This document shows, piece after piece, positions 2,984 through 39,555 of a DNA stretch of 64,000 nucleotides (position 1 is the first letter of the stretch; every line of letters starts with the position of its first letter). The DNA lies in contig OZ059894.1 of assembly GCA_964057225.1 (NCBI GenBank), positions 8,308,001-8,372,000 on the forward strand, written 5' to 3'. The notes beneath the pieces were generated by a model. That model saw nothing but the letters and a program-made list of their open reading frames with translations. It did no database searches and was not told where the DNA came from. The position numbers and the translations under genes were made by a program. This DNA comes from Auanema rhodensis. Its lineage: Eukaryota > Animalia > Nematoda.

Positions 2984-3396
2984 CGTTCCATGGTGGTTCC
3001 CCAGGGTTCCGGCTGGGTAACCACATGGAATTACTTTCTTTTCTTCCAAATATAAATGATAAAGAGTATAGAGAGAAAGGTTTATTTATGATAAAGTATA
3101 CAAATTACAATAATAAAAGTTACATAATGATTCCTAGTCGCAGCCCAAAGGATTCGTAAGGAAACCTTATATAGTATTCCTTACGAGCATAAAAAGTGGT
3201 TATATCAGGTCCGCGGAACTTGGTTCCGCTTGAATTGGGCTTTCTTTAATTAAACTTAATATGAAAATGTGTTCGTTCATTGTTGCATTGAATTCCTGTT
3301 TCTCAAATGTAGCGTCAGCTATTTGTTTTTATAATGTTCCGTTTTATAAGCGATTGACGTTGTCAATCGCTCTACTTATAGGACACGTATGGAACA
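2984..3396 (-). repeat. 3' LTR of element A
   Basis: Identical by eye to 6726-7138; + strand ends CGTTCCAT...ATGGAACA (7/8 inverted match); minus-strand AATAAA at 3081-3086. Confidence 0.95.
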
Positions 3397-3599
3397 TGCC
3401 TAATATCGAAAAAGTAGCTGACCTCAGCTACATCGAGAAAGTGAAATTCCATGCAAATGTGAAAGTTGTATGAAATGTTTCAAAAAATAAAAGAATACTG
3501 ATAATACAGAACAATTTTATGAGAAAAAATAAAAGGAAAACAATGTAATTACAAAATAATATATCATATATCATACTGGGAATCTTTCAAAAGTTCTTT

Positions 3600-4202
3600 T
3601 TAGTATTCTTCATAATACTGGTGTATCTCTGGTAATGGTGATGATCCTAGGTCGTGGAGAAGATCCATAGTCTTGTTGCATAAATTCGTTTTTCTTTCCA
3701 TTTCTTCCTTGGTGGTTGCTGGTGATGCCAGAAATATTTGTAGAGCATTTATAATGCTTTTTCTTGCCTCTGTGGATGGCAGTTCGCTGCAATGTTGCAG
3801 GCTCCATTCTTGATAGGCCGAATGGGTCTCAGCAATAATCCAGTTTGGTGTCTGCTGTTCTGGTGAATCGCAACTAGGTGAATAACCTAGTTGGTCCCTT
3901 AGTTCAGCAATGGCATCTCGGATGACTCCTGCTGTGTTGGTCCATGGTCCTATGCAGTGGTCAACCTCCGACAGTTGATCCTTGTCGTATTGGTAACATA
4001 GGATTTTGAGCGTTTCAGTACTGGTGTTCGCTCTTGTTAGTCCTTGAACTAACTCTTTCAGGATCTTCTCTTTCCTGGGGCGGTTGGCGATGGTATTGGC
4101 GCCTAGCTGCTTCAATTCTCTTACTAATAGTTGAATTGAAAGCCATCTCTTTTTGGCCATCATGAGGGGAATTTCGACGGCTTCAGGGAGTTGGGTGGAC
4201 AT
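3600..4202 (-). CDS. Hypothetical 200-aa protein, probably alpha-helical, cargo of element A
   Basis: ATG-initiated uninterrupted ORF, GC-richer than the AT-rich flanks, amphipathic patterning; no CCHC, protease, RT or integrase motif recognised. Confidence 0.65.
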   Translation of the reverse strand: MSTQLPEAVEIPLMMAKKRWLSIQLLVRELKQLGANTIANRPRKEKILKELVQGLTRANTSTETLKILCYQYDKDQLSEVDHCIGPWTNTAGVIRDAIAELRDQLGYSPSCDSPEQQTPNWIIAETHSAYQEWSLQHCSELPSTEARKSIINALQIFLASPATTKEEMERKTNLCNKTMDLLHDLGSSPLPEIHQYYEEY

Positions 4203-4567
4203 TGTTATCTTTGTTACTGTTTTCTGTCCTTTTTATCCTTTTTAAAACTAGGTCGGTCTGTTCCTTCCTTTTTGTCGCCTCCTTTTTGACCAGTTAGGTG
4301 AAAAAAAATGATGAAGATTGTTGATTAAAACTTTGCAGTGATTTTTGAAAGATTCCAAGTATGATGTATAATTTTATTTTGAAATTTTGGTTATTGATAC
4401 AATATTTTTATGAGAGTGAAAAAATAAAAATGTACAATAATTTGTGTAGAATTTCATGTATTACTTAAATGAGAAAAAAAAATTATATATAGGTTCAAGT
4501 TTAGATGAAAATTATGAAAATGGTATTATACTTTTTGTGATTTTTATATAGAAATTATGGATTTTTA

Positions 4568-4846
4568 CTATTGTTCTAGCTTCTTACTTGTAGTCCCAAT
4601 AACTGTTGATGGTCTTTTCTTATGGATGACTGGTACTGTTGGTGCCACGAAGTTTGGGTCCGGGATCTGACTCTTCGAAACTCTCTTCTTCGGCTCTGTT
4701 ACTGGTATGGTGCTGTGATACCTTATCGGCACATGATAAGGCTTTGCTGGCGTTGTAGGAGAATTATCTTCTAATCCCAATGCCAATTTAAGTGCTGAAC
4801 TCCATTTCTTAATTGTGGGTGGCTCCTTCTTCCGTTCCTCATACAA
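4568..4846 (-). CDS. Basic Pro/Lys-rich ORF, probable continuation of the 5304 ORF
   Basis: Composition like the upstream ORF; this frame stays open upstream (LSEKIEENARKELYEERKK) and overlaps the end of 4867-5304 in the -1 frame. Confidence 0.45.
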   Translation of the reverse strand: MYEERKKEPPTIKKWSSALKLALGLEDNSPTTPAKPYHVPIRYHSTIPVTEPKKRVSKSQIPDPNFVAPTVPVIHKKRPSTVIGTTSKKLEQ

Positions 4847-4866
4847 TTCTTTTCTTGCGTTTTCTT

Positions 4867-5304
4867 CTATTTTCTCTGATAGTTTGGTGAATTTCGAGGA
4901 AGAGGAGAAGAAAGAATAGCAGTATTTGGGTATGAAAATGATATTTGAGAATAATCTTTACAAGGGGAAGTATTTGTGCTAACATAGCTAGAGCTTTTGA
5001 TAACGTTAGAATTGCGTTTAGGAGTTTGTTTGTTAATAGACGTTTTAATTTTACTAAGAGTAATAGCGTGGCGAGAAGTTTTGATAGCTGTTGTGCCTAT
5101 TTTTTTCGCGGGGGTACCCGGTATAGCGGGTGGTTTCTTTGCAGCAGTAGGTCGGCGCTTCGTGTCCGGCTCATAAACATTTGGAGGTCCTCTTTTTCTT
5201 TGATTCCGCTCGAGTACTGGCTCGACGTGCGTATCATTACCGGGGGCTGCGCTCTGTGGATTTGATTTATCCTGCGGAGGATTTTTACTCTTCGAGTCCG
5301 TCAT
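4867..5304 (-). CDS. Hypothetical basic, disordered protein (145 aa as read; NLS-like RNQRKR and KRRP)
   Basis: ATG start preceded 13 nt upstream by a TTTCCAG splice-acceptor-like site (5318-5324, minus); K/P/S/T-rich. Confidence 0.55.
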   Translation of the reverse strand: MTDSKSKNPPQDKSNPQSAAPGNDTHVEPVLERNQRKRGPPNVYEPDTKRRPTAAKKPPAIPGTPAKKIGTTAIKTSRHAITLSKIKTSINKQTPKRNSNVIKSSSYVSTNTSPCKDYSQISFSYPNTAILSSPLPRNSPNYQRK

Positions 5305-6027
5305 CTTGTTGGTTTTCCTGGAAAGGAAATTATTATACCAACGATGCGAATCTTATAAAAATATATATACAACGTGAGAGGCAATATGGGGTTGTATGCG
5401 TGACGCTTGCTAGGGGGCCAGCCTGCAGCGAATCTTCTAACGGAGAATTGCTCAATCGGGTACATACACGGGCCTGTGACCGGTGCGCCCTTTCTAGGAT
5501 CAAGTTCCCATCTCTCGAATAGGCGTGAAATATACGACGGTGATCTAAGCAGTATTCCCTTTCAGTCTTTCGACAAGATTAGGTGCTCAGGCCTCGTACA
5601 TTCACTTTCCCAGACTTCTCTTGCCTATGAAAAATCACAGAAATCGCTCCCTTAACGAAATTCTGCTCCCCTGATTTTTCATGGTGAGACCACTCTAACA
5701 CTTTCATTCTCGACTAATTCTGTCGTAATTTTCAAATTTGCAAAAATAGGACCAAAAAGGGATCTTCAAAATCAGGAATGCGTACGTCTTATATCAAAAA
5801 TAGTGGTTGCCTCCGCTCAGTTCTCGAGACAGTCTGGTATTGCTTCTCACGGGCTACTTTTAGGATCAAAATGCAAAATTATAAATCTTAGTTTCGGGAT
5901 TCAGATAAAAAAAACTTCAAAATTATTTGACTGTTTTCTGGGTTATATTAGGAAAAAGAGAAAAAATAATAGTAATAAGAGAGGGAAAAAGATAAAATTT
6001 AAAAGAAGATAAAAAAAAAATAAAATA

Positions 6028-6106
6028 GGAATATAGTAGGAATATAGTAGGAATATAGTACTAGTATAGAATAGTTTTGTACATAAATATATATATATAT
6101 ATATAT
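6028..6106. repeat. Three copies of 11-bp GGAATATAGTA plus a (TA)n microsatellite in the element A leader
   Basis: Directly visible; coordinates approximate. Confidence 0.8.
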
Positions 6107-6706
6107 AAAGGAGTAATACATTTTAAAGGATAGAATAGAAATTAATGAATTTTAATATATATAAAACAATGAATTTTGTGATGATTCATAAAAGAAACTA
6201 ATTCATTTTTGATTCAAAAATTGTTTGAAACTTTATAACAAAAATTTATAAGAGATAGAATAGATTTTGATTAAAAAAAACAGAAAAAGAAAAGATTGAC
6301 AGAAAAAAAAATATCGAAATACCTTTCTTTAAATGAATAAATATAAAAGAATTTCAAATTAATTTATGATAGTTATAAACAAAGTTTTTCCTCAAAAATG
6401 AATGAAAGATCTTAGAATATGGATAAAAATCGAAATGTTTCTTTTAAATGAATGAATATAAAATTTCAAAATTAAGTTGTTTCAAAATATATTTTTTTAA
6501 ATAAATGTATATAAGATTTCAGTATTAATTTATGAATCAAAATCAAAATAAAGTTCTTTGAATGAATGAAATAAAGAAGAGAAAGACTTCAAATTGAATT
6601 CATATAGCATAATCGAAATATAATTCTTTAATTAGATGTATGAAAGACAACAAAATTAAATTTATGTAGCGAAATATGGTTCTTAGAGATTCGTCGGTTA
6701 TAGACG

Positions 6707-6725
6707 AATCTCGGTGGAACCTCCA
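6707..6725 (-). promoter_or_regulatory. Primer-binding site for tRNA-Gln (element A)
   Basis: Minus strand TGGAGGTTCCACCGAGATT directly follows the 5' LTR; + strand AATCTCGGTGGAACCT-CCA equals the recalled metazoan tRNA-Gln 3' end plus CCA. Confidence 0.9.
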
Positions 6726-7138
6726 CGTTCCATGGTGGTTCCCCAGGGTTCCGGCTGGGTAACCACATGGAATTACTTTCTTTTCTTCCAAATATAAATG
6801 ATAAAGAGTATAGAGAGAAAGGTTTATTTATGATAAAGTATACAAATTACAATAATAAAAGTTACATAATGATTCCTAGTCGCAGCCCAAAGGATTCGTA
6901 AGGAAACCTTATATAGTATTCCTTACGAGCATAAAAAGTGGTTATATCAGGTCCGCGGAACTTGGTTCCGCTTGAATTGGGCTTTCTTTAATTAAACTTA
7001 ATATGAAAATGTGTTCGTTCATTGTTGCATTGAATTCCTGTTTCTCAAATGTAGCGTCAGCTATTTGTTTTTATAATGTTCCGTTTTATAAGCGATTGAC
7101 GTTGTCAATCGCTCTACTTATAGGACACGTATGGAACA
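6726..7138 (-). repeat. 5' LTR of element A
   Basis: 413-bp direct repeat of 2984-3396, adjacent to the PBS. Confidence 0.95.
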
Positions 7139-7233
7139 ATCAGAAAATATGGATCATTGACTGACCTAAAACAGAAGTAGAAACTTCACAAGTCTAGATT
7201 GTTGAGTATATGTGCTTCCGTGGCGCAATAGGC

Positions 7234-7269
<36 letters not shown>

Positions 7270-7492
7270 GAGCCCACCCGGGAGCGAAATATTTTTGGTT
7301 TCCACAGTTCCAATAAAGCAAAATTAAAATTTTAATTCATCTACTTACGATCTCATTCATAAATTTTCTAGAAGGATTGGATAAGATAGACCAGAACATC
7401 AGAAAATATAGATCATTGACTGATCCAAAACAGAAGTAGAAACTTCACAAGTCTAGATTGTTGAGTATATGTGCTTCCGTGGCGCAATAGGC

Positions 7493-7528
<36 letters not shown>

Positions 7529-7751
7529 GAGCCCACCCGGGAGCGAAATATTTTTGGTTTCCACAGTTCCAATTAAGCAAAATTAAAATTTTAATTCATC
7601 TACTTACGATCTCATTCATAAATTTTCTAGAAGGATTGGATAAGATAGACCAGAACATCAGAAAATATGGATCATTGACTGATCTAAAACAGAAGTAGAA
7701 ACTTCACAAGTCTAGATTGTTGAGTATATGTGCTTCCGTGGCGCAATAGGC

Positions 7752-7787
<36 letters not shown>

Positions 7788-8010
7788 GAGCCCACCCGGG
7801 AGCGAAATATTTTTGGTTTCCACAGTTCCAATTAAGCAAAATTAAAATTTTAATTCATCTACTTACGATCTCGTTCATAAATTTTCTAGAAGGATTGGAT
7901 AAGAAAGAGCAGAACTTGGGAAAATACGGATCATTGACTGATCTAAAACAGAAGTAGAAACTTCACAAGTTTAGATTGTTGAGTATATGTGCTTCCGTGG
8001 CGCAATAGAC

Positions 8011-8046
<36 letters not shown>

Positions 8047-8269
8047 GAGCCCACCCGGGAGCGAAATATTTTTGGTTTCCACAGTTCCAATTAAGCAAAA
8101 TTAAAATTTTAATTCATCTACTTACGATCTCATTCATAAATTTTCTAGAAGGATTGGATAAGATAGACCAGAACATCAGAAAATATGGATCATTGACTGG
8201 TCTAAAACAGAAGTAGAAACTTCACAAGTCTAGATTGTTGAGTATATGTGCTTCCGTGGCGCAATAGGC

Positions 8270-8305
<36 letters not shown>

Positions 8306-8528
8306 GAGCCCACCCAGGAGCGAAATATTTTTGGTTTCCACAGTTCCAATTAAGCGAAATTAAAATTTTAATTCATCTACTTACGATCTCATTCATAAAT
8401 TTTCTAGAAGGATTGGATAAGATAGACCAGAACATCAGAAAATATAGATCATTGACTGATCCAAAACAGAAGTAGAAACTTCACAAGTCTAGATTGTTGA
8501 GTATATGTGCTTCCGTGGCGCAATAGGC

Positions 8529-8564
<36 letters not shown>

Positions 8565-8799
8565 GAGCCCACCCGGGAGCGAAACATTTTTGATTTCCAC
8601 AGTTCAAATTAAGCTTCAAATTGAGCGAAATTAAAATTTTAATTCATCTACTTACGATCTCATTCATAAATTTTCTAGAAGGATTGGATAAGATAGACCA
8701 GAACATCAGAAAATATGGATCATTGACTGATCTAAAACAGAAGTAGAAACTTCACAAGTCTAGAATGTTGAGTATATGTGCTTCCGTGGCGCAATAGGC

Positions 8800-8835
<36 letters not shown>

Positions 8836-9058
8836 GAGCCCACCCGGGAGCGAAATATTTTTGGTTTCCACAGTTCCAATTAAGCAAAATTAAAATTTTA
8901 ATTCATCTACTTACGATCTCATTCATAAATTTTCTAGAAGGATTGGATAAGATAGACCAGAACATCAGAAAATATAGATCATTGACTGATCCAAAACAGA
9001 AGTAGAAACTTCACAAGTCTAGATTGTTGAGTATATGTGCTTCCGTGGCGCAATAGGC

Positions 9059-9094
<36 letters not shown>

Positions 9095-9329
9095 GAGCCC
9101 ACCCGGGAGCGAAACATTTTTGATTTCCACAGTTCAAATTAAGCTTCAAATTGAGCGAAATTAAAATTTTAATTCATCTACTTACGATCTCATTCATAAA
9201 TTTTCTAGAAGGATTGGATAAGATAGACCAGAACATCAGAAAATATGGATCATTGACTGATCTAAAACAGAAGTAGAAACTTCACAAGTCTAGATTGTTG
9301 AGTATATGTGCTTCCGTGGCGCAATAGGC

Positions 9330-9365
<36 letters not shown>

Positions 9366-9588
9366 GAGCCCACCCGGGAGCGAAATATTTTTGGTTTCCA
9401 CAGTTCCAATAAAGCAAAATTAAAATTTTAATTCATCTACTTACGATCTCATTCATAAATTTTCTAGAAGGATTGGATAAGATAGACCAGAACATCAGAA
9501 AATATAGATCATTGACTGATCCAAAACAGAAGTAGAAACTTCACAAGTCTAGATTGTTGAGTATATGTGCTTCCGTGGCGCAATAGGC

Positions 9589-9624
<36 letters not shown>

Positions 9625-9847
9625 GAGCCCACCCGGGAGCGAAATATTTTTGGTTTCCACAGTTCCAATTAAGCAAAATTAAAATTTTAATTCATCTACT
9701 TACGATCTCATTCATAAATTTTCTAGAAGGATTGGATAAGATAGACCAGAACATCAGAAAATATAGATCATTGACTGATCCAAAACAGAAGTAGAAACTT
9801 CACAAGTCTAGATTGTTGAGTATATGTGCTTCCGTGGCGCAATAGGC

Positions 9848-9883
<36 letters not shown>

Positions 9884-10106
9884 GAGCCCACCCGGGAGCG
9901 AAATATTTTTGGTTTCCACAGTTCCAATTAAGCAAAATTAAAATTTTAATTCATCTACTTACGATCTCATTCATAAATTTTCTAGAAGGATTGGATAAGA
10001 TAGACCAGAACATCAGAAAATATAGATCATTGACTGATCCAAAACAGAAGTAGAAACTTCACAAGTCTAGATTGTTGAGTATATGTGCTTCCGTGGCGCA
10101 ATAGGC

Positions 10107-10139
<33 letters not shown>

Positions 10140-10364
10140 CTCGAGCCCACCCGGGAGCGAAATATTTTTGGTTTCCACAGTTCCAATAAGCGAATTTAAA
10201 ATTTTAATTCATCTACTTACGATCTCATTCATAAATTTTCTAGAAGGATTGGATAAGATAGACCAGAACATCAGAAAATATAGATCATTGACTGATCCAA
10301 AACAGAAGTAGAAACTTCACAAGTCTAGATTGTTGAGTATATGTGCTTCCGTGGCGCAATAGGC

Positions 10365-10400
<36 letters not shown>

Positions 10401-10635
10401 GAGCCCACCCGGGAGCGAAACATTTTTGATTTCCACAGTTCAAATTAAGCTTCAAATTGAGCGAAATTAAAATTTTAATTCATCTACTTACGATCTCATT
10501 CATAAATTTTCTAGAAGGATTGGATAAGATAGACCAGAACATCAGAAAATATGGATCATTGACTGATCTAAAACAGAAGTAGAAACTTCACAAGTCTAGA
10601 ATGTTGAGTATATGTGCTTCCGTGGCGCAATAGGC

Positions 10636-10671
<36 letters not shown>

Positions 10672-10894
10672 GAGCCCACCCGGGAGCGAAATATTTTTGG
10701 TTTCCACAGTTCCAATAAAGCAAAATTAAAATTTTAATTCATCTACTTACGATCTCATTCATAAATTTTCTAGAAGGATTGGATAAGATAGACCAGAACA
10801 TCAGAAAATATAGATCATTGACTGATCCAAAACAGAAGTAGAAACTTCACAAGTCTAGATTGTTGAGTATATGTGCTTCCGTGGCGCAATAGGC

Positions 10895-10930
<36 letters not shown>

Positions 10931-11153
10931 GAGCCCACCCGGGAGCGAAATATTTTTGGTTTCCACAGTTCCAATTAAGCAAAATTAAAATTTTAATTCA
11001 TCTACTTACGATCTCATTCATAAATTTTCTAGAAGGATTGGATAAGATAGACCAGAACATCAGAAAATATAGATCATTGACTGATCCAAAACAGAAGTAG
11101 AAACTTCACAAGTCTAGATTGTTGAGTATATGTGCTTCCGTGGCGCAATAGGC

Positions 11154-11189
<36 letters not shown>

Positions 11190-11412
11190 GAGCCCACCCG
11201 GGAGCGAAATATTTTTGGTTTCCACAGTTCCAATAAAGCAAAATTAAAATTTTAATTCATCTACTTACGATCTCATTCATAAATTTTCTAGAAGGATTGG
11301 ATAAGATAGACCAGAACATCAGAAAATATAGATCATTGACTGATCCAAAACAGAAGTAGAAACTTCACAAGTCTAGATTGTTGAGTATATGTGCTTCCGT
11401 GGCGCAATAGGC

Positions 11413-11448
<36 letters not shown>

Positions 11449-11671
11449 GAGCCCACCCGGGAGCGAAATATTTTTGGTTTCCACAGTTCCAATAAAGCAA
11501 AATTAAAATTTTAATTCATCTACTTACGATCTCATTCATAAATTTTCTAGAAGGATTGGATAAGATAGACCAGAACATCAGAAAATATAGATCATTGACT
11601 GATCCAAAACAGAAGTAGAAACTTCACAAGTCTAGATTGTTGAGTATATGTGCTTCCGTGGCGCAATAGGC

Positions 11672-11707
<36 letters not shown>

Positions 11708-11930
11708 GAGCCCACCCGGGAGCGAAATATTTTTGGTTTCCACAGTTCCAATTAAGCAAAATTAAAATTTTAATTCATCTACTTACGATCTCATTCATAA
11801 ATTTTCTAGAAGGATTGGATAAGATAGACCAGAACATCAGAAAATATGGATCATTGACTGATCTAAAACAGAAGTAGAAACTTCACAAGTCTAGATTGTT
11901 GAGTATATGTGCTTCCGTGGCGCAATAGGC

Positions 11931-11963
<33 letters not shown>

Positions 11964-12188
11964 CTCGAGCCCACCCGGGAGCGGAATATTTTTGGTTTCC
12001 ACAGTTCCAATAAGCGAATTTAAAATTTTAATTCATCTACTTACGATCTCATTCATAAATTTTCTAGAAGGATTGGATAAGATAGACCAGAACATCAGAA
12101 AATATAGATCATTGACTGATCCAAAACAGAAGTAGAAACTTCACAAGTCTAGATTGTTGAGTATATGTGCTTCCGTGGCGCAATAGGC

Positions 12189-12224
<36 letters not shown>

Positions 12225-12446
12225 GAGCCCACCCGGGAGCGAAATATTTTTGGTTTCCACAGTTCCAATAAGCGAAATTAAAATTTTAATTCATCTACTT
12301 ACGATCTCATTCATAAATTTTCTAGAAGGATTGGATAAGATAGACCAGAACATCAGAAAATATAGATCATTGACTGATCCAAAACAGAAGTAGAAACTTC
12401 ACAAGTCTAGATTGTTGAGTATATGTGCTTCCGTGGCGCAATAGGC

Positions 12447-12482
<36 letters not shown>

Positions 12483-12963
12483 GAGCAAACCCGGGAGCGA
12501 AATATTTTTGGTTTCCACAGTTCCAATTAAGCAAAATTAAAATTTTAATTCATCTACTTACGATCTCATTCATAAATTTTCTAGAAGGATTGGATAAGAA
12601 AGAGCAGAACTTGGGAAAATACGGATCATTGACTGATCTAAAACAGAAGTAGAAACTTCACAAGTTTAGATTGTTGAGTATATGTGCTTCCGTGGCGCAA
12701 TAGGCAGCGCGTTCGGCTGTTAACCGAAAATTTGGTGGTTCGAGCCCACCCGGGAGCGAAATATTTTTGGTTTCCACAGTTCCAATAAGCGAAATTAAAA
12801 TTTTAATTCATCTACTTACGATCTCATTCATAAATTTTCTAGAAGGATTGGATAAGATAGACCAGAACATCAGAAAATATAGATCATTGACTGATCCAAA
12901 ACAGAAGTAGAAACTTCACAAGTCTAGATTGTTGAGTATATGTGCTTCCGTGGCGCAATAGGC

Positions 12964-12999
<36 letters not shown>

Positions 13000-13201
13000 G
13001 AGCCCACCCGGGAGCGAAATATTTTTGGTTTCCACAGTTCCAATAAGCGAAATTAAAATTTTAATTCATCTACTTACGATCTCATTCATAAATTTTCTAG
13101 AAGGATTGGATAAGATAGACCAGAACATCAGAAAATATAGATCATTGACTGATCCAAAACAGAAGTAGAAACTTCACAAGTCTAGATTGTTGAGTATATG
13201 T

Positions 13202-13274
13202 GCTTCCGTGGCGCAATAGCCAGTGCGTTCGGCTGTTAACCGAAAGGTTGGTGATTCGAGCCCACCCGGGAGCG
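13202..13274 (+). pseudogene. Triple-mutant tRNA-Asn copy (also at about 19741, 25740, 27035)
   Basis: AATAGCCAGTGCG (D-loop GG lost, D-stem C>T) plus B-box G53A (GTGATTCGAG). Confidence 0.7.
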
Positions 13275-13481
13275 AAATATTTTTGGTTTCCACAGTTCCA
13301 ATTAAGCAAAATTAAAATTTTTAATTCATCTACTTACGATCTCATTCATAAATTTTCTAGAAGGATTGGATAAGATAGACCAGAACATCAGAAAATATAG
13401 ATCATTGACTGATCCAAAACAGAAGTAGAAACTTCACAAGTCTAGATTGTTGAGTATATGTGCTTCCGTGGCGCAATAGGC

Positions 13482-13517
<36 letters not shown>

Positions 13518-13740
13518 GAGCCCACCCGGGAGCGAAATATTTTTGGTTTCCACAGTTCCAATTAAGCAAAATTAAAATTTTAATTCATCTACTTACGATC
13601 TCATTCATAAATTTTCTAGAAGGATTGGATAAGAAAGAGCAGAACTTGGGAAAATACGGATCATTGACTGATCTAAAACAGAAGTAGAAACTTCACAAGT
13701 TTAGATTGTTGAGTATATGTGCTTCCGTGGCGCAATAGGC

Positions 13741-13776
<36 letters not shown>

Positions 13777-13999
13777 GAGCCCACCCGGGAGCGAAATATT
13801 TTTGGTTTCCACAGTTCCAATTAAGCAAAATTAAAATTTTAATTCATCTACTTACGATCTCATTCATAAATTTTCTAGAAGGATTGGATAAGATAGACCA
13901 GAACATCAGAAAATATGGATCATTGACTGGTCTAAAACAGAAGTAGAAACTTCACAAGTCTAGATTGTTGAGTATATGTGCTTCCGTGGCGCAATAGGC

Positions 14000-14035
<36 letters not shown>

Positions 14036-14258: not shown

Positions 14259-14294
<36 letters not shown>

Positions 14295-28350: not shown

Positions 28351-28386
<36 letters not shown>

Positions 28387-28609: not shown

Positions 28610-28645
<36 letters not shown>

Positions 28646-28868
28646 GAGCCCACCCGGGAGCGAAATATTTTTGGTTTCCACAGTTCCAATTAAGCAAAAT
28701 TAAAATTTTAATTCATCTACTCACGATCTCATTCATAAATTTTCTAGAAGGATTGGATAAGATAGACCAGAACATCAGAAAATATGGATCATTGACTGAT
28801 CTAAAACAGAAGTAGAAACTTCACAAGTCTAGATTTTTGAGAGTATGTGCTTCCGTGGCGCAAAAGGC

Positions 28869-28904
<36 letters not shown>

Positions 28905-29139
28905 GAGCCCACCCGGGAGCGAAACATTTTCGATTTCCACAGTTCAAATTAAGCTTCAAATTGAGCAAAATTAAAATTTTAATTCCTCTACTTACGATCT
29001 CATTCATAAATTTTCTAGAAGGATTGGATAAAATAGACCAGAACATCAGAAAATATGGATCATCGACTGATCTAAAACAGAAGTAGAACCTTCACAAGTC
29101 TAGATTGTTGAGTATATGTGCTTCCGTGGCGCAATAGGC

Positions 29140-29171
<32 letters not shown>

Positions 29172-29407
29172 ATTCGAGCCCACCCGGGAGCGAAATATTT
29201 TTGGTTTCCACAGTTCCAATTAAGCAAAATTAAAATTTTAATTCATCTACTTACAATCTCATTCATAAATTTTCTAGAAGGATTGGATAAGATAGACCAG
29301 AACATCAGAAAATATGGATCATTGACTGATGTAAAACAGAAGTAGAATTTCTTGAACCTTCACAAGTCTAGATTGTTAAGTATATGTGCTTCCGTGGCGC
29401 AATAGGC

Positions 29408-29439
<32 letters not shown>

Positions 29440-29678
29440 ATTCGAGCCCACCCGGGAGCGAAATATTTTTGGTTTCCACAGTTCCAATTAAGCTTCAAAT
29501 TGAGCAAAATTAAAATTTTAATTCCTCTACTTACGATCTCATTCATAAATTTTCTAGAAGGATTGGATAAAATAGACCAGAACATCAGAAAATATGGATC
29601 ATCGACTGATCTAAAACAGAAGTAGAACCTTCACAAGTCTAGATTGTTGAGTATATGTGCTTCCGTGGCGCAATAGGC

Positions 29679-29710
<32 letters not shown>

Positions 29711-29937
29711 ATTCGAGCCCACCCGGGAGCGAAATATTTTTGGTTTCCACAGTTCCAATTAAGCAAAATTAAAATTTTAATTCATCTACTTACAATCTCA
29801 TTCATAAATTTTCTAGAAGGATTGGATAAGATAGACCAGAACATCAGAAAATATGGATCATCGACTGATCTAAAACAGAAGTAGAACCTTCACAAGTCTA
29901 GATTGTTGAGTATATGTGCTTCCGTGGCGCAATAGGC

Positions 29938-29969
<32 letters not shown>

Positions 29970-30196
29970 ATTCGAGCCCACCCGGGAGCGAAATATTTTT
30001 GGTTTCCACAGTTCCAATTAAGCAAAATTAAAATTTTAATTCCTCTACTTACGATCTCATTCATAAATTTTCTAGAAGGATTGGATAAGATAGACCAGAA
30101 CATCAGAAAATATGGATCATCGACTGATCTAAAACAGAAGTAGAACCTTCACAAGTCTAGATTGTTGAGTATATGTGCTTCCGTGGCGCAATAGGC

Positions 30197-30228
<32 letters not shown>

Positions 30229-30455
30229 ATTCGAGCCCACCCGGGAGCGAAATATTTTTGGTTTCCACAGTTCCAATTAAGCAAAATTAAAATTTTAATT
30301 CCTCTACTTACGATCTCATTCATAAATTTTCTAGAAGGATTGGATAAGATAGACCAGAACATCAGAAAATATGGATCATTGACTGATCTAAAACAGAAGT
30401 AGAAACTTCACAAGTCTAGATTTTTGAGAGTATGTGCTTCCGTGGCGCAAAAGGC

Positions 30456-30491
<36 letters not shown>

Positions 30492-30726
30492 GAGCCCACC
30501 CGGGAGCGAAACATTTTCGATTTCCACAGTTCAAATTAAGCTTCAAATTGAGCAAAATTAAAATTTTAATTCCTCTACTCACGATCTCATTCATAAATTT
30601 TCTAGAAGGATTGGATAAGATAGACCAGAACATCAGAAAATATGGATCATTGACTGATCTAAAACAGAAGTAGAACCTTCACAAGTCTAGATTGTTGAGT
30701 ATATGTGCTTCCGTGGCGCAATAGGC

Positions 30727-30762
<36 letters not shown>

Positions 30763-30994
30763 GAGCCCACCCGGGAGCGAAATATTTTTGGTTTCCACAG
30801 TTCCAATTAAGCAAAATTAAAATTTTAATTCATCTACTTACAATCTCATTCATAAATTTTCTAGAAGGATTGGATAAGATAGACCAGAACATGAGAAAAT
30901 ATGGATCATTGACTGATGTAAAACAGAAGTAGAATTTCTTGAACCTTCACAAGTCTAGATTGTTAAGTATATGTGCTTCCGTGGCGCAATAGGC

Positions 30995-31030
<36 letters not shown>

Positions 31031-31265
31031 GAGCCCACCCGGGAGCGAAATTTTTTTGGTTTCCACAGTTCCAATTAAGCTTCAAATTAAGCAAAATTAA
31101 AATTTTGATTCATCTACTTACGATCTCATTCATAAATTTTCTAGAAGGATTGGATAAGATAGACCAGAACATCAGAAAATATGGATCATTGACTGATCTA
31201 AAACAGAAGTAGAAACTTCACAAGTCTAGATTGTTGAGTATATGTGCTTCCGTGGCGCAATAGGC

Positions 31266-31301
<36 letters not shown>

Positions 31302-31524
31302 GAGCCCACCCGGGAGCGAAATTTTTTTGGTTTCCACAGTTCCAATTAAGCAAAATTAAAATTTTAATTCATCTACTCACGATCTCATTCATAAATTTTC
31401 TAGAAGGATTGGATAAGATAGACCAGAACATCAGAAAATATGGATCATTGACTGATCTAAAACAGAAGTAGAAACTTCACAAGTCTAGATTTTTGAGAGT
31501 ATGTGCTTCCGTGGCGCAAAAGGC

Positions 31525-31560
<36 letters not shown>

Positions 31561-31795
31561 GAGCCCACCCGGGAGCGAAACATTTTCGATTTCCACAGTT
31601 CAAATTAAGCTTCAAATTGAGCAAAATTAAAATTTTAATTCCTCTACTTACGATCTCATTCATAAATTTTCTAGAAGGATTGGATAAAATAGACCAGAAC
31701 ATCAGAAAATATGGATCATCGACTGATCTAAAACAGAAGTAGAACCTTCACAAGTCTAGATTGTTGAGTATATGTGCTTCCGTGGCGCAATAGGC

Positions 31796-31827
<32 letters not shown>

Positions 31828-32063
31828 ATTCGAGCCCACCCGGGAGCGAAATATTTTTGGTTTCCACAGTTCCAATTAAGCAAAATTAAAATTTTAATTC
31901 ATCTACTTACAATCTCATTCATAAATTTTCTAGAAGGATTGGATAAGATAGACCAGAACATCAGAAAATATGGATCATTGACTGATGTAAAACAGAAGTA
32001 GAATTTCTTGAACCTTCACAAGTCTAGATTGTTAAGTATATGTGCTTCCGTGGCGCAATAGGC

Positions 32064-32095
<32 letters not shown>

Positions 32096-32334
32096 ATTCG
32101 AGCCCACCCGGGAGCGAAATATTTTTGGTTTCCACAGTTCCAATTAAGCTTCAAATTGAGCAAAATTAAAATTTTAATTCCTCTACTTACGATCTCATTC
32201 ATAAATTTTCTAGAAGGATTGGATAAAATAGACCAGAACATCAGAAAATATGGATCATCGACTGATCTAAAACAGAAGTAGAACCTTCACAAGTCTAGAT
32301 TGTTGAGTATATGTGCTTCCGTGGCGCAATAGGC

Positions 32335-32366
<32 letters not shown>

Positions 32367-32593
32367 ATTCGAGCCCACCCGGGAGCGAAATATTTTTGGT
32401 TTCCACAGTTCCAATTAAGCAAAATTAAAATTTTAATTCATCTACTTACAATCTCATTCATAAATTTTCTAGAAGGATTGGATAAGATAGACCAGAACAT
32501 CAGAAAATATGGATCATCGACTGATCTAAAACAGAAGTAGAACCTTCACAAGTCTAGATTGTTGAGTATATGTGCTTCCGTGGCGCAATAGGC

Positions 32594-32625
<32 letters not shown>

Positions 32626-32852
32626 ATTCGAGCCCACCCGGGAGCGAAATATTTTTGGTTTCCACAGTTCCAATTAAGCAAAATTAAAATTTTAATTCCT
32701 CTACTTACGATCTCATTCATAAATTTTCTAGAAGGATTGGATAAGATAGACCAGAACATCAGAAAATATGGATCATCGACTGATCTAAAACAGAAGTAGA
32801 ACCTTCACAAGTCTAGATTGTTGAGTATATGTGCTTCCGTGGCGCAATAGGC

Positions 32853-32884
<32 letters not shown>

Positions 32885-33111
32885 ATTCGAGCCCACCCGG
32901 GAGCGAAATATTTTTGGTTTCCACAGTTCCAATTAAGCAAAATTAAAATTTTAATTCCTCTACTTACGATCTCATTCATAAATTTTCTAGAAGGATTGGA
33001 TAAGATAGACCAGAACATCAGAAAATATGGATCATTGACTGATCTAAAACAGAAGTAGAAACTTCACAAGTCTAGATTTTTGAGAGTATGTGCTTCCGTG
33101 GCGCAAAAGGC

Positions 33112-33147
<36 letters not shown>

Positions 33148-33382
33148 GAGCCCACCCGGGAGCGAAACATTTTCGATTTCCACAGTTCAAATTAAGCTTC
33201 AAATTGAGCAAAATTAAAATTTTAATTCCTCTACTCACGATCTCATTCATAAATTTTCTAGAAGGATTGGATAAGATAGACCAGAACATCAGAAAATATG
33301 GATCATTGACTGATCTAAAACAGAAGTAGAACCTTCACAAGTCTAGATTGTTGAGTATATGTGCTTCCGTGGCGCAATAGGC

Positions 33383-33418
<36 letters not shown>

Positions 33419-33650
33419 GAGCCCACCCGGGAGCGAAATATTTTTGGTTTCCACAGTTCCAATTAAGCAAAATTAAAATTTTAATTCATCTACTTACAAT
33501 CTCATTCATAAATTTTCTAGAAGGATTGGATAAGATAGACCAGAACATGAGAAAATATGGATCATTGACTGATGTAAAACAGAAGTAGAATTTCTTGAAC
33601 CTTCACAAGTCTAGATTGTTAAGTATATGTGCTTCCGTGGCGCAATAGGC

Positions 33651-33686
<36 letters not shown>

Positions 33687-33921
33687 GAGCCCACCCGGGA
33701 GCGAAATTTTTTTGGTTTCCACAGTTCCAATTAAGCTTCAAATTAAGCAAAATTAAAATTTTGATTCATCTACTTACGATCTCATTCATAAATTTTCTAG
33801 AAGGATTGGATAAGATAGACCAGAACATCAGAAAATATGGATCATTGACTGATCTAAAACAGAAGTAGAAACTTCACAAGTCTAGATTGTTGAGTATATG
33901 TGCTTCCGTGGCGCAATAGGC

Positions 33922-33957
<36 letters not shown>

Positions 33958-34171
33958 GAGCCCACCCGGGAGCGAAATTTTTTTGGTTTCCACAGTTCCA
34001 ATTAAGCTTCAAATTAAGCAAAATTAAAATTTTAATTCATCTACTTACGATCTCATTCATAAATTTTCTAGAAGGATTGGATAAGATAGACCAGAACATC
34101 AGAAATTATGGATCATTGCTGATCTAAAACAAAAGTAGAAACTTCACAAGTCTAGATTGTTGAGTATATGT

Positions 34172-34208
34172 GCTTCCGTGGCGCAATAGGCAGCGCGTTC
34201 GGCTGTTA
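34172..34208 (+). pseudogene. 5'-half tRNA-Asn truncated at A37 by the inversion junction
   Basis: ...TTCGGCTGTTA then one T, then reverse-complement spacer TATCTTATCC. Confidence 0.9.
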
Positions 34209-34209
34209 T

Positions 34210-34340
34210 TATCTTATCCAATCCTTCTAGAAAATTTATGAATGAGATCGTAAGTAGATGAATCAAAATTTTAATTTTGCTTAATTTGAAGCTTAATTGG
34301 AACTGTGGAAACCAAAATTATTTCGCTCCCGGGTGGGCTC

Positions 34341-34376
<36 letters not shown>

Positions 34377-34610
34377 GCCTATTGAGCCACGGAAGCACAT
34401 ATACTCAACAATCTAGACTTGTGAAGTTTCTACTTTTGTTTTAGATCAGCAATGATCCATAATTTCTGATGTTCTGGTCTATCTTATCCAATCCTTCTAG
34501 AAAATTTATGAATGAGATCGTAAGTAGATGAATTAAAATTTTAATTTTGCTTAATTTGAAGCTTAATTGGAACTGTGGAAACCAAAAAAATTTCGCTCCC
34601 GGGTGGGCTC

Positions 34611-34646
<36 letters not shown>

Positions 34647-34881
34647 GCCTATTGCGCCACGGAAGCACATATACTCAACAATCTAGACTTGTGAAGTTTC
34701 TACTTCTGTTTTAGATCAGTCAATGATCCATATTTTCTGATGTTCTGGTCTATCTTATCCAATCCTTCTAGAAAATTTATGAATGAGATCGTAAGTAGAT
34801 GAATCAAAATTTTAATTTTGCTTAATTTGAAGCTTAATTGGAACTGTGGAAACCAAAAAAATTTCGCTCCCGGGTGGGATC

Positions 34882-34917
<36 letters not shown>

Positions 34918-35152
34918 GCCTATTGCGCCACGGAAGCACATATACTCAACAATCTAGACTTGTGAAGTTTCTACTTTTGTTTTAGATCAGTCAATGATCC
35001 ATATTTTCTGATGTTCTGGTCTATCTTATCCAATCCTTTTAGAAAATTTATGAATGAGATCGTAAGTAGATGAATTAAAATTTTAATTTTGCTTAATTTG
35101 AAGCTTAATTGGAACTGTGGAAACCAAAAATATTTCGCTGCCGGGTGGGCTC

Positions 35153-35188
<36 letters not shown>

Positions 35189-35424
35189 GCCTATTGCGCC
35201 ACGGAAGCACATATACTCAACAATCTAGACTTGTGAAGTTTCTACTTTTGTTTTAGATCAGTCAATGATCCATATTTTCTGATGTTTTGCTCTATCTTAT
35301 CCAATCCTTCTAGAACATTTATGAATGAGATCGTAAGTAGATGAATAAAAATTTTAATTTTGCTTAATTTGAAGCTTAATTGGAACTGTGGAAACCAAAA
35401 ATACTTCGCTCCCGGGTGGGCTCA

Positions 35425-35459
<35 letters not shown>

Positions 35460-35694
35460 GCCTATTGCGCCACGGAAGCACATATACTCAACAATCTAGA
35501 CTTGTGAATTTTCTACTTCTGTTTTAGATCAGTCAATGATCCATATTTTCTGATGTTCTGGTCTATCTTATCCAATCCTTCTAGAAAATTTATGAATGAG
35601 ATCGTAAGTAGATGAATCAAAATTTTAATTTTGCTTAATTTGAAGCTTAATTGGAACTGTGGAAACCAAAAAAATTTCGCTCCCGGGTGGGCTC

Positions 35695-35730
<36 letters not shown>

Positions 35731-35966
35731 GCCCATTGCGCCACGGAAGCACATATACTCAACAATCTAGACTTGTGAATTTTCTACTTCTGTTTTAGAT
35801 CAGTCAATGATCCATATTTTCTGATGTTCTGGTCTATCTTATCCAATCCTTCTAGAAAATTTATGAAAGAGATCGTAAGTAGATGAATCAAAATTTTAAT
35901 TTTGCTTAATTTGAAGCTTAATTGGAACTGTGGAAACCAAAAATACTTCGCTCCCGGGTGGGCTCA

Positions 35967-36001
<35 letters not shown>

Positions 36002-36023
36002 GCCCATTGCGCCACGGAAGCAC
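34210..36023 (-). repeat. Tandem tRNA-Asn array, - arm, segment 1 (7 genes, most with point mutations)
   Basis: Reverse-complement 270/271-bp units; gene 5' ends at 34396, 34666, 34937, 35208, 35479, 35750, 36021. Confidence 0.96.
35949..36021 (-). pseudogene. tRNA-Asn copy abutting element B; B-box C56T, D-loop A>G, native 5' flank replaced by LTR
   Basis: GGTTTGAG replaces GGTTCGAG; AATGGGC replaces AATAGGC; the LTR begins 2 nt upstream of +1. Confidence 0.7.
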
Positions 36024-36368
36024 CGTTCCGTTACGCTCCTGCGTCGATAATATAAACCATTGTAGTTTATACTATGACGCGCATAGTATTCCTTGGTGTA
36101 GCGGTAAGGAATAAAGAGCATAAGGTCAATCATAAGATAAAAGAGAGAAAGATTTATTGGCATGAAACTACAACAATAATATACAAAGATAAAGATACAA
36201 TACAATAAGATAAATATAAGTATAAAGACTAAACTACAAGCCGTCCATGAGCTTGCTAAGAGGCGAACTCCCGACCAAGGGAACGAGGGAAGGCGGAGCC
36301 ATTCCTCGGTCCTCTGGTCGTCTGGCTCTAACCCTTCAGCTACATATATGGGGAGTCCGAATGGAACG
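36024..36368 (-). repeat. 3' LTR of element B
   Basis: Ends CGTTCC...GGAACG (perfect 6-bp inverted repeat); minus-strand AATAAA at 36153-36158. Confidence 0.95.
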
Positions 36369-37006
36369 TGCCCTTTCAAAGATTTTTCGCGTCCGCGCGA
36401 TATAAAGAGTTTTTAGTGTATATGTAGCTGAGTTTCAGAGTCTAGGAGTTTACAATTAAAATTAAAAGTTTTAAAATCTACATGTAGAAAGATATTTAAA
36501 TGGTATTAATAGGTTTCTTTATGGTATTAAGATAGAATTTGAATACAATAATGGGTTTTATGTTATTTTGTAACGGAGGATTAGAAAAATAAATTTAGTC
36601 ATTGTAGTACTGTAATAAAAAAAAATTGTTCCATGAATTTGAGATTTATGTGAGATAATAAGGAATTATTCAACTTTTTGCGTGCATGGTTACTCGTATC
36701 CTAATGATGATGGGGATAAAGATTTTTAGTTATTAATTGTTTTCGTCTTCATGTGTCTCTCTGAATGAATCCTTGAGTACTAATGGAGGCTACCACTCAG
36801 ATGGGGTGTGGCTTAGGCGCCTGCCAATTTTCGTCTCTTCTTGGAGATACATATGGAGCTCAATTTAGTGCGATAGACTATCTCTATCATCGTAAAGAAG
36901 TACGGTAGCCTATTATTTATATTATATTTTCACTTATTCCTTATTTTTGGTTGTTTATTCTCTTAATCTCTCATCAAAATTTTTCTAATTCACCGTTACT
37001 TTCATT

Positions 37007-37480
37007 TTACAATCTACAGAAAAGAAAAGAATGTATATAAAAAATTTTTCTGTCGTCGGCTATGATGAAGTCCGGATCTTCGTAGGTGTCGTCAGAAGGT
37101 GAATATGTTCCTTCTCGGGGAGTATAAAACTGGTCGACTTGCGACTTCGGCTTCTCGGCTGGTTGGTGCGGTTTTTCTATTTGAACACTAAGAAGTCGGG
37201 TACGGCTTCTGCGACGACTTGCGACAGTAGCGTCACTGTTGGTATCGGACGGGTAAAGGGCTCGGAAAGCCGATGAGAATCTTTTGGCCACCGTTATAGG
37301 ACTCTTGGTTTGGAAAACCCGAGAATGGTGAGCTACGTGTGGGATGTTGACGTAAGGTGCGTAAGATTCTTTTAGATGTGTGTTGGGAGAGAGAAAGATT
37401 CGGGAGCAATAGGATTTTCGTGCTTCGCTGGGCGATGCGGAGGGTAAATGAGAGGGAGTTTTCCAAATTTTGGCCAACAA
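37007..37480 (-). CDS. Ser/Pro/Arg-rich ORF, possibly a degraded gene
   Basis: 157 codons open, basic RRRSRTR patch and acidic tail, but no ATG start and all upstream frames are interrupted by stops. Confidence 0.3.
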   Translation of the reverse strand: MLAKIWKTPSHLPSASPSEARKSYCSRIFLSPNTHLKESYAPYVNIPHVAHHSRVFQTKSPITVAKRFSSAFRALYPSDTNSDATVASRRRSRTRLLSVQIEKPHQPAEKPKSQVDQFYTPREGTYSPSDDTYEDPDFIIADDRKIFYIHSFLFCRL

Positions 37481-37710
37481 TCTGACTCCGCCTATCTACC
37501 GTAAGCTTATTATAGTTAATGGTGTTTATCTTTTCTCAAAAACTATTTTTATCCGCTCTTGCACTTTCCGCTTGTACTTCCTTTAATTTCTCTCTTCACT
37601 AGTAGCTTTCAATCATGTTTTTGTCCCAATTTTTTCTCTTGTTTACCAAGCTAGATTTTATTATTTTTGAGAGCTAAGAATTCATAAAAATGAGCGTCTA
37701 GCCTACTGGA

Positions 37711-38225
37711 ATGACCTTTGTCATGCAAAAGCTGTATGACGTTATTGTCTTTTATGATGCTGAAGAGAGATTGGCTTATAGGCCCCATCCTGATATAGTA
37801 TTAATGGTTGGTGCATTAGTCAATTTCAGTATTTTCTTTTGCTATTTTAGTTTATTGAGGATCTGCAAATGTTCTATTTGGGCAGGGGCCTCGTTAATTT
37901 TTCCGCTATGGCGGAAATTGCGCCCGAGATTGAGCTCGTAGGGCGTCTCTGCCTCCGTGACCTCTGCGCGCATTCTTATGCCGCTCTCCCGTGTGGACTT
38001 GTAGGAAGTCCCTGGAGATGGTATACCGAGAGGCAGCCTTTATTCTATGAATTATTATGTAAAATTTTGTTTAAAATTTATGTATGTTATGATAGCTCTT
38101 CGCTTGGATTGCAGCTGAGGGCCTCACTGGGGAGAGAGTATCCCGAATACCTCACCCCCAGTTACGAGCCTATCTCTCTTGTTGCAGAGTTTGAGAGACA
38201 GCTAGCTTTCAAGTGGGGATTTTGA
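37711..38225 (+). CDS. Spliced hypothetical protein (about 156 aa), antisense cargo gene in element B; exons 37711-37806 and 37851-38225
   Basis: A 44-nt GTTGGT...TTTTAG intron (37807-37850) joins ORFs 37711 and 37869 in frame (...HPDIVLM|FIEDLQMFYLG...); AATAAA at 38229-38234 just after the stop. Confidence 0.6.
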
Positions 38226-39197
38226 CTGAATAAAGCTTGTACTCTGTGTTTTTATTTTTATGCGCTTTGCTCTGTTTTCGTCAAGAAAATGGACTTATGT
38301 TTTCAATCTTTTCCTCATTCTTTTTCCCTTAAATAGCATGTTTTGCTCAAAATGTTTTCGACATTGTGCATGCTAATGAGGTTTGAGGAGAGTTATTGAA
38401 AAGGCTGTCCTTTTTCTCGATCAAAATAAGCAAAAGTGCGTTTTCCTAAGCGAATTTCTTTTTAAAATGAGAAAAATACGTCTATTTTTAAACATTTCCC
38501 ATTTACTTAGGATTACTTTAGGAGATAAGGGGTATCTTATGAGTTGAAACAACGAAATGATTTGAGGAAGGTGACATAATCTACGGGGATAAAATCCGTA
38601 GCAGTTATGCTTCCGCCAACTTGACCTGACTGTCAAATAAGAGCTGAGAAGTCTTAATGCAGATTTACCAGGCTTTTTCGGACTAGTGTGGTCTCTTTTT
38701 ATATTCAATTTATGTAACCGTTTTTGGTTTCCCGCAAAATAATATGTAAAATGATCTTTTACGTCTGAATATAATAATTTTTCAAAATTCTAGTCCTGAC
38801 CACAAAATATACAAACTATAATCAATTGCACGCGTCTTTTAAATTTTTGTTCCGATAATCAAACTTCTCTATGCCCAAAAAAATGTGAACAATTATAATT
38901 TCTCGTTTGGCGAAAGTGTCCTCTATTTCAATCCAAACGTCCTCAAAATGGCATGAGAAGCGGTACAAGATACGATATAGAAAAGGGTGGATATTCAGAC
39001 GGTTTTAAATTGAGGACGGCGGGCAAAAATTTTATGGGTCCTATCTCGCATTTAAGCGAGATCCCTTGTATCTGTACCTTAAAACAAATTGGCGCCTTCA
39101 TTTTGTTGTTTCAAGTGGAGGAATTTATAATTTAGAATGCAAAAATGGACTTTTACAATAAAAAAAAAATTTTTTTTTTTTCAAAAGATGAGTTCGA

Positions 39198-39210
39198 GGT
39201 GGAACCTCCA
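39198..39210 (-). promoter_or_regulatory. Primer-binding site for tRNA-Gln (element B)
   Basis: + strand GGTGGAACCTCCA, the same 13 nt as in element A, abutting the LTR; preceded by GAGTTC, which matches the T arm of tRNA-Gln. Confidence 0.88.
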
Positions 39211-39555
39211 CGTTCCGTTACGCTCCTGCGTCGATAATATAAACCATTGTAGTTTATACTATGACGCGCATAGTATTCCTTGGTGTAGCGGTAAGGAATA
39301 AAGAGCATAAGGTCAATCATAAGATAAAAGAGAGAAAGATTTATTAGCATGAAACTACAACAATAATATACAAAGATAAAGATACAATACAATAAGATAA
39401 ATATAAGTATAAAGACTAAACTACAAGCCGTCCATGAGCTTGCTAAGAGGCGAACTCCCGACCAAGGGAACGAGGGAAGGCGGAGCCATTCCTCGGTCCT
39501 CTGGTCGTCTGGCTCTAACCCTTCAGCTACATATATGGGGAGTCCGAATGGAACG
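39211..39555 (-). repeat. 5' LTR of element B
   Basis: 345-bp direct repeat of 36024-36368. Confidence 0.95.

Follow-up and report, generated by a model that had tools for sequence, protein, structure and literature searches.

A 64,000-bp stretch of the Auanema rhodensis genome (contig OZ059894.1, positions 8,308,001 to 8,372,000, hereafter the window) was found to contain two insertions, referred to as elements A and B, that have the organization of long terminal repeat (LTR) retrotransposons. The two elements measure 4155 bp (A) and 3532 bp (B), and for both the sense strand is the minus strand of the window. Because each displays LTR-retroelement anatomy without replication enzymes of its own, we consider that A and B probably represent two unrelated non-autonomous LTR retrotransposon families, each by one copy, and that they resemble the large retrotransposon derivatives (LARDs). 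As the cis-acting signals are the only sequences common to A and B, it is plausible that the two elements parasitise the same helper or closely related helpers.

The setting in which the elements reside allowed their boundaries to be defined precisely. The entire window, with a G+C content of ~38%, is one tandem array of 212 tRNA-Asn(GTT) genes identified with ARAGORN, arranged in units of 259 or 271 bp, and the array is broken only at positions 2984-7138 (element A) and 36024-39555 (element B). The tRNA-Asn appears closer to invertebrate sequences than to those of vertebrates, plants or yeast, which would fit an invertebrate host. Each element is flanked by an exact 4-bp duplication. Deletion of the element together with one copy of the duplication leaves an empty site that matches an adjacent array unit in a gapless alignment; by count from the printed alignments, 4 of 334 positions are mismatched at A and 8 of 346 at B. 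Subtracting the element and the duplication from the tRNA-to-tRNA spacing leaves 259 bp at A and 271 bp at B. Given the exact duplications and the gapless empty sites, A and B are true insertions with 4-bp target-site duplications. The two LTRs of A are identical over 413 bp, and those of B differ at a single position (36159) out of 345. Both insertions are recent, and both occurred later than the local amplification of the tRNA-Asn array. The coordinates of all features are collected in Table 1.

Table 1. Positions of the features of elements A and B in the window; the strand is given relative to the window, and ORF, PBS and pI denote open reading frame, primer-binding site and isoelectric point.
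Feature	Coordinates	Strand	Remarks
A target-site duplication, left copy ATCA	2980-2983		from empty-site reconstruction
A 3' LTR, 413 bp	2984-3396	-	sense start TGTTCCATACG, sense end CCATGGAACG; identical to 6726-7138
A plus-strand primer (polypurine-tract) site	3397-3408	-	sense ...ATATTAGGCA just before 3' LTR
A inverted-repeat arm, 46 nt, imperfect	3547-3592		8 nt after ORF2 stop; partner 4343-4386
A ORF2, 200 aa, ATG start	3600-4202	-	acidic, pI 5.4, predicted all-helical
A inverted-repeat second arm	4343-4386		141-184 nt upstream of ORF2 ATG
A ORF1b, stop-free, 129 codons	4568-4957	-	-1 frame relative to ORF1a, 88-nt overlap
A ORF1a, 145 aa, ATG start	4867-5304	-	basic, pI 10.4, Pro/Ser/Lys/Thr-rich, probably disordered
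A long leader	5650-6706	-	~5850-6650 at 17-26% G+C, short degenerate repeats, (TA)n run
A PBS TGGAGGTTCCACCGAGATT	6707-6725	-	19 nt complementary to tRNA-Gln 3' end, followed by 10-bp hairpin
A 5' LTR, 413 bp	6726-7138	-	U5 hairpin ~6728-6772 directly before terminal GGAACG
A target-site duplication, right copy ATCA	7139-7142		72-75 bp upstream of tRNA-Asn 7214-7286
tRNA-Asn(GTT) gene	35949-36021	-	5' end adjoins element B; GCAC duplication covers mature tRNA positions -2 to +2
B target-site duplication, left copy GCAC	36020-36023		from empty-site reconstruction
B 3' LTR, 345 bp	36024-36368	-	sense start CGTTCCATTCG, sense end AACGGAACG
B polypurine-tract-like run	36369-36380	-	sense TTTGAAAGGGCA just before 3' LTR
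B longest sense open piece, 162 codons	37007-37495	-	no ATG, no codon periodicity
B antisense ORF, 118 aa, ATG start	37869-38225	+	G+C-richer island; AATAAA 5 nt after stop
B PBS TGGAGGTTCCACC	39198-39210	-	13 nt complementary to tRNA-Gln 3' end
B 5' LTR, 345 bp	39211-39555	-	U5 hairpin ~39219-39272 before terminal GGAACG
B target-site duplication, right copy GCAC	39556-39559		from empty-site reconstruction

The signals expected to be recognized in trans are shared by the two elements. In both, the PBS begins immediately at the LTR edge, with a gap of 0 nt, and matches printed mouse tRNA-Gln probes perfectly, for 19 nt in A and for 13 in B. The 19-mer GGAACGTGGAGGTTCCACC, which joins the terminal GGAACG of the LTR to TGGAGGTTCCACC, has only two occurrences in the window, one at each U5/PBS junction, against an expectation of none by chance. 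A block surrounding the polyadenylation signal, AATAAAYCTTTCTCTCT, is found within the window in the four LTRs only, and reads AATAAACCTTTCTCTCT at 3070-3086 in the 3' LTR of A and AATAAATCTTTCTCTCT at 36142-36158 in the 3' LTR of B. Likewise, the string GGCA followed by YGTTCCATWCG is confined, within the window, to the two junctions with the 3' LTR. The LTR ends constitute short terminal inverted repeats of the form YGTTCC...GGAACG, and a stable hairpin is predicted in U5 just before the GGAACG/PBS junction of the two elements (z = -5.3 and -4.4). Outside these motifs the LTR bodies of A and B align poorly, and nothing in common between the interiors was detected by blastn or tblastx. Judged by these comparisons, A and B are two distinct, unrelated families.

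At the U5 end of A, the last 12 nt (in CACCATGGAACG, window 6726-6745, sense) were observed to be reverse-complementary at 11 of 12 positions to the start of a printed tRNA-Gln forward primer, GGTTCCATGGTG; owing to this complementarity, the U5 end and the PBS of A would be able to pair in the manner of a tRNA acceptor stem. Of this acceptor-stem-like sequence, B shares only GGAAC.

The interiors were examined for replication genes by scanning with Pfam all start-to-stop ORFs of at least 60 aa, sense-strand stop-free pieces of at least ~45 aa, and the longest antisense pieces, with three very A+T-rich, low-complexity sense pieces of A left out. No scanned piece of either element gave a significant match to any Pfam family, so that no recognisable reverse transcriptase, RNase H, integrase, protease or gag was found. 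Scans with Pfam, PHROGs and NCBIfam returned only sub-threshold noise (TRH, ITI_HC_C and Chordopox_E11, all with E >= 0.1), and an Rfam scan of A and B with E values up to 1 retrieved the flanking tRNAs only, with no hammerhead ribozyme. These results agree with much of what had been proposed in a first-pass annotation of the window, namely that the LTR pairs are young, that both elements sit inside a tRNA array (now identified as tRNA-Asn), that neither carries pol functions in its scanned open pieces, and that the two share a kit consisting of a tRNA-Gln PBS, LTR termini, a 4-bp duplication size and a polyadenylation-signal block while being largely dissimilar elsewhere.

If A and B are indeed non-autonomous, their mobilization can be outlined from the established retrotransposition cycle. 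Transcription would start in the 5' LTR and the transcript would be polyadenylated after the common AATAAA block in the 3' LTR, whereupon the particles of an autonomous LTR element would package the RNA. Minus-strand synthesis would be primed by host tRNA-Gln, paired with the PBS directly 3' of GGAACG, and plus-strand synthesis would proceed from the ...GGCA/YGTTCC junction. The integrase of the helper would then read the YGTTCC...GGAACG ends and make a 4-bp staggered cut. In combination, GGAACG plus TGGAGGTTCCACC, the YGTTCC ends and the 4-bp duplication provide a precise search key for an active helper.

Using the 19-mer of the U5/PBS junction, no match was obtained in viral contigs, and a metagenome scan yielded two matches (L001 and L002). 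The second is a bacterial coding sequence and was rejected as a chance match. The first, positions 9874-10080 of L001 (Ga0126342_10016451), which is eukaryote-like, contains GGAACGTGGAGGTTCCACCTC, 21 nt of which are identical to the U5/PBS junction of B, with CGTTCC located ~190 nt upstream of it. Neither a second LTR nor a long ORF was present in the remaining 2.8 kb, and the contig showed no further resemblance to either element. This match may represent a related LTR edge in another organism. An ORF crossing the LTR of B, used as a probe for LTR copies among called genes, also gave no match.

Several observations weigh against the assignment of A and B as fully helper-dependent families. 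No further copy of either element is present within the window, so that a single copy of each underlies the inference of movement in trans and of family status, and nothing usable concerning a helper or other copies emerged from the public protein and DNA collections searched. Instead of the canonical TG...CA, the LTR termini are TG...CG (A) and CG...CG (B); plant LTR families with non-canonical termini have been documented (PMC5659011). The polypurine tract of A is poor, comprising only ATATTAGGCA with little purine enrichment; in B, a moderate polypurine run, GAAAGGGCA, precedes the 3' LTR. A very divergent gag would escape the Pfam scan, and A carries three long sense frames that could supply an unrecognised Gag-like protein, so full dependence on a helper may not hold for this element.

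This last point leads to the alternative that survives best, in which A is semi-autonomous, with ORF1a/1b and ORF2 constituting its own divergent Gag-like proteins rather than cargo and only pol being borrowed. Such an arrangement has precedent in gag-only LTR elements such as BARE2, which supply their own structural protein and borrow the pol functions. All three of the longest stop-free frames of A (210, 161 and 129 codons) are sense-strand frames located downstream of the leader. Each exceeds every one of 500 dinucleotide shuffles, and their positions match blocks of ~40-52% G+C, between which the spacers have 17-22% G+C. Codon-position periodicity is evident in ORF1a (p = 7e-8) and ORF1b (p = 0.006 to 0.03) and marginal in ORF2 (p = 0.07). 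Element A, with its coding-like open frames, is not simply non-coding. In its basic and probably disordered character, ORF1a resembles many nucleic-acid-binding Gag regions, and the predicted all-helical nature of ORF2 also fits a Gag-like protein. The overlap of ORF1a with ORF1b, which is in the -1 frame, contains a single heptamer of the X_XXY_YYZ form, C_CCA_AAT at 4930-4924. However, we estimate the probability of finding such a heptamer in this overlap by chance at ~16%, or about 1 in 6, and no stable structure that could stimulate frameshifting follows it (z = -0.2). Programmed -1 frameshifting in A is accordingly not supported, and at this site it cannot be distinguished from a plain frameshift mutation.

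The searches for relatives of these frames also count against semi-autonomy. Neither a gag family nor a zinc knuckle or capsid-like fold was recognised. Neither ORF1a nor ORF2 had a homologue in a word-indexed collection of 5.8 billion protein clusters, a meaningful sequence match in the PDB (phmmer) or a relative in viral contigs, and an exhaustive HMMER search with ORF2 against 1.84 billion representatives likewise found no homologue; if these frames were the gag of a widespread lineage, relatives would have been expected. An exact look-up of ten ORFs, among them ORFs of the array unit, returned no identical copy on record. The AlphaFold model of ORF2, predicted from the single sequence, is all-helical but of low confidence (pLDDT, the model's per-residue confidence score, of 56), and it gave no Foldseek match at E <= 0.001 against the PDB or viral libraries. 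In addition, the 1.4-kb leader is unusually long. On balance, semi-autonomy of A is a possibility to be taken seriously, albeit a rather unlikely one.

ORF2 is bracketed by a 46-nt imperfect inverted repeat whose arms are identical at 39 of 46 columns (E = 8e-11). A nested transposon bounded by this repeat is not supported, as no duplication was seen outside the arms. The repeat could instead form a long-range RNA stem or be a trace of the acquisition of the ORF block.

The location of both insertions in the array raises a second possibility, that the helper integrase targets RNA polymerase III genes and that insertion into the tRNA array is favoured rather than accidental. Integration directed to RNA polymerase III genes is a property of Ty3, Ty1 and the tRNA-targeting elements of Dictyostelium. 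The B duplication straddles the 5' end of a tRNA-Asn gene and A lies a short distance upstream of the next tRNA (Table 1), as might be expected from such targeting. However, the entire 64-kb window consists of the array, which makes location within it uninformative, and A and B differ in both their position and their orientation relative to the tRNAs. We put the probability of a tRNA 5' end being hit by one of two random insertions at ~5%, which is not compelling, and we regard targeting as unlikely. Should insertions prove to be enriched at tRNA genes, they would offer a rare instance of polymerase III-directed integration in an animal.

The array itself displays a number of irregularities. 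Plus-strand tRNA genes extend as far as 33975, the genes from 34323 onward occupy the minus strand, and between 34172 and 34330 the direction flips at a convergent, palindrome-like junction, after which the units are on the minus strand. At this junction (34172-34208), a plus-strand tRNA-Asn gene is truncated in the anticodon loop, ending in GCTGTTA, and fused to an inverted spacer. Four units of 343 bp, as opposed to 259 or 271 bp, are located within 44523-44940, 47516-47933 and 48919-49679, and both of the 343-bp units that were aligned contain an internal spacer duplication of ~70-85 bp. The tRNA-Asn gene adjoining element B (35949-36021) reads CTCAAACC on the plus strand in the region of the T arm, as does the nearest unit on the other side, whereas the aligned gene at 39755-39829 and later aligned units read CTCGAACC; the gene next to B may thus be a weakened copy. 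Scans of public genome and viral contigs with the array spacer and the tRNA-Asn body gave no match.

A third possibility is gene transduction, of which maize Bs1 is an example: A and B would be LTR elements that carry functional orphan host genes and spread them. The mosaic appearance of A, with G+C-richer blocks at its ORFs and spacers of ~19-21% G+C, and open frames in the two elements longer than those of shuffled sequences would be consistent with captured genes. In B, fewer than 1% of dinucleotide shuffles match the open pieces of 162, 124 and 122 codons, and the antisense ORF of 118 aa followed by AATAAA 5 nt after its stop offers a weak hint of a captured fragment. On the other hand, the three open pieces of B lack codon periodicity (p = 0.16 to 0.84), as does the antisense ORF, and the ORFs of B, for which only family-library scans were run, gave no family match. 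The longest sense open piece of B, lacking periodicity and an ATG, is probably not a gene, and B as a whole looks non-coding. For A, ORF1 is broken by the frame change, and no homologue was found for any ORF searched, hence no donor gene was identified. In plants, LTR elements that captured genes are documented, with examples from rice and sorghum (PMC3726574).

Taken together, these observations make gene transduction an improbable explanation. The first-pass annotation had portrayed both elements as moving orphan genes, a description that for A can be retained only in the sense of long sense frames with coding-like statistics and no homologues, and that does not extend to B, since its frames show no periodicity and the longest lacks an ATG, although they exceed nearly all shuffles. 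The most elaborate proposal, an animal LTR lineage with a tRNA gene-directed integrase, whose non-autonomous satellites would package and spread functional lineage-specific genes (ORF1 and ORF2 of A) and thereby form a gene-shuttling system in tRNA arrays, is very improbable. Nevertheless, if the frames of A were found to be expressed and conserved, they would exemplify orphan genes borne by a retroelement. Finally, although long tandem arrays are prone to mis-assembly, an origin of the LTR-like repeats by assembly error or segmental duplication without retrotransposition is effectively excluded by the exact 4-bp duplications with gapless empty-site reconstructions, the tRNA-complementary PBS directly abutting the LTR in A as well as B and the junction motifs common to A and B.

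We therefore return to the assignment of A and B as non-autonomous, LARD-like LTR retrotransposons. The elements are an ordinary, well-described kind of genomic parasite and not a new system, and the known repeats of the host may already include them. On present evidence they belong to routine repeat annotation, as clean, very young examples with exact empty sites that can be used to mark recent retrotransposition in this genome. The suggestion that they represent an undescribed system had to be abandoned, as non-autonomous LTR retrotransposons without a recognisable master copy have already been described, animals included (PMC3286476, PMC3532108).

Comparison with known groups places A and B as follows. 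Retrozymes make 4-bp duplications, and A and B were considered as members of this group and rejected because the Rfam scans detected no hammerhead. Retrozymes are non-autonomous LTR elements like A and B, but they are small and contain hammerhead ribozymes in their LTRs (PMC4918200). Gene-carrying and gag-only LTR elements, such as those from rice and sorghum (PMC3726574), likewise lack pol and have interior ORFs that are not replication enzymes, but their ORFs have an identifiable host or gag homologue, whereas no homologue was found for the ORFs of A. LARDs and miniature terminal-repeat retrotransposons (TRIMs), which are mobilised in trans, share with A and B the order LTR, PBS, interior, polypurine-tract site (poor in A) and LTR and the absence of pol. 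TRIMs are shorter than 1 kb, and A (4.2 kb) and B (3.5 kb) were not classified as such, their lengths of 4155 and 3532 bp exceeding the ~1 kb limit. The first LARDs described, those of barley, have LTRs of ~4.4 kb, much longer than those of A and B (as quoted in PMC3532108).

Among animals, the ant PbTRIM elements resemble A and B in their 4-bp duplications and youth and have no known helper, but their PBS is complementary to tRNA-Leu (PMC3532108). For bivalve TRIMs, an autonomous partner was sought and none was found (PMC6934838). Close counterparts by description are the cqUNK elements of the mosquito Culex quinquefasciatus, 38 non-autonomous LTR families without coding capacity or a master copy, two of which, cqUNK_35 and cqUNK_45, have a tRNA-Gln PBS (PMC3286476). 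As in A and B, their LTRs measure a few hundred bp within a total length of 3-7 kb, and a tRNA-complementary PBS is present; gag and pol are absent from the cqUNK families and were not recognised in the scanned pieces of A and B. The listed cqUNK families differ in having 5-bp duplications and internal tandem repeats, where the duplications of A and B are 4 bp long and tandem repeats are almost lacking, and A is further set apart from the cqUNK families by its long open frames.

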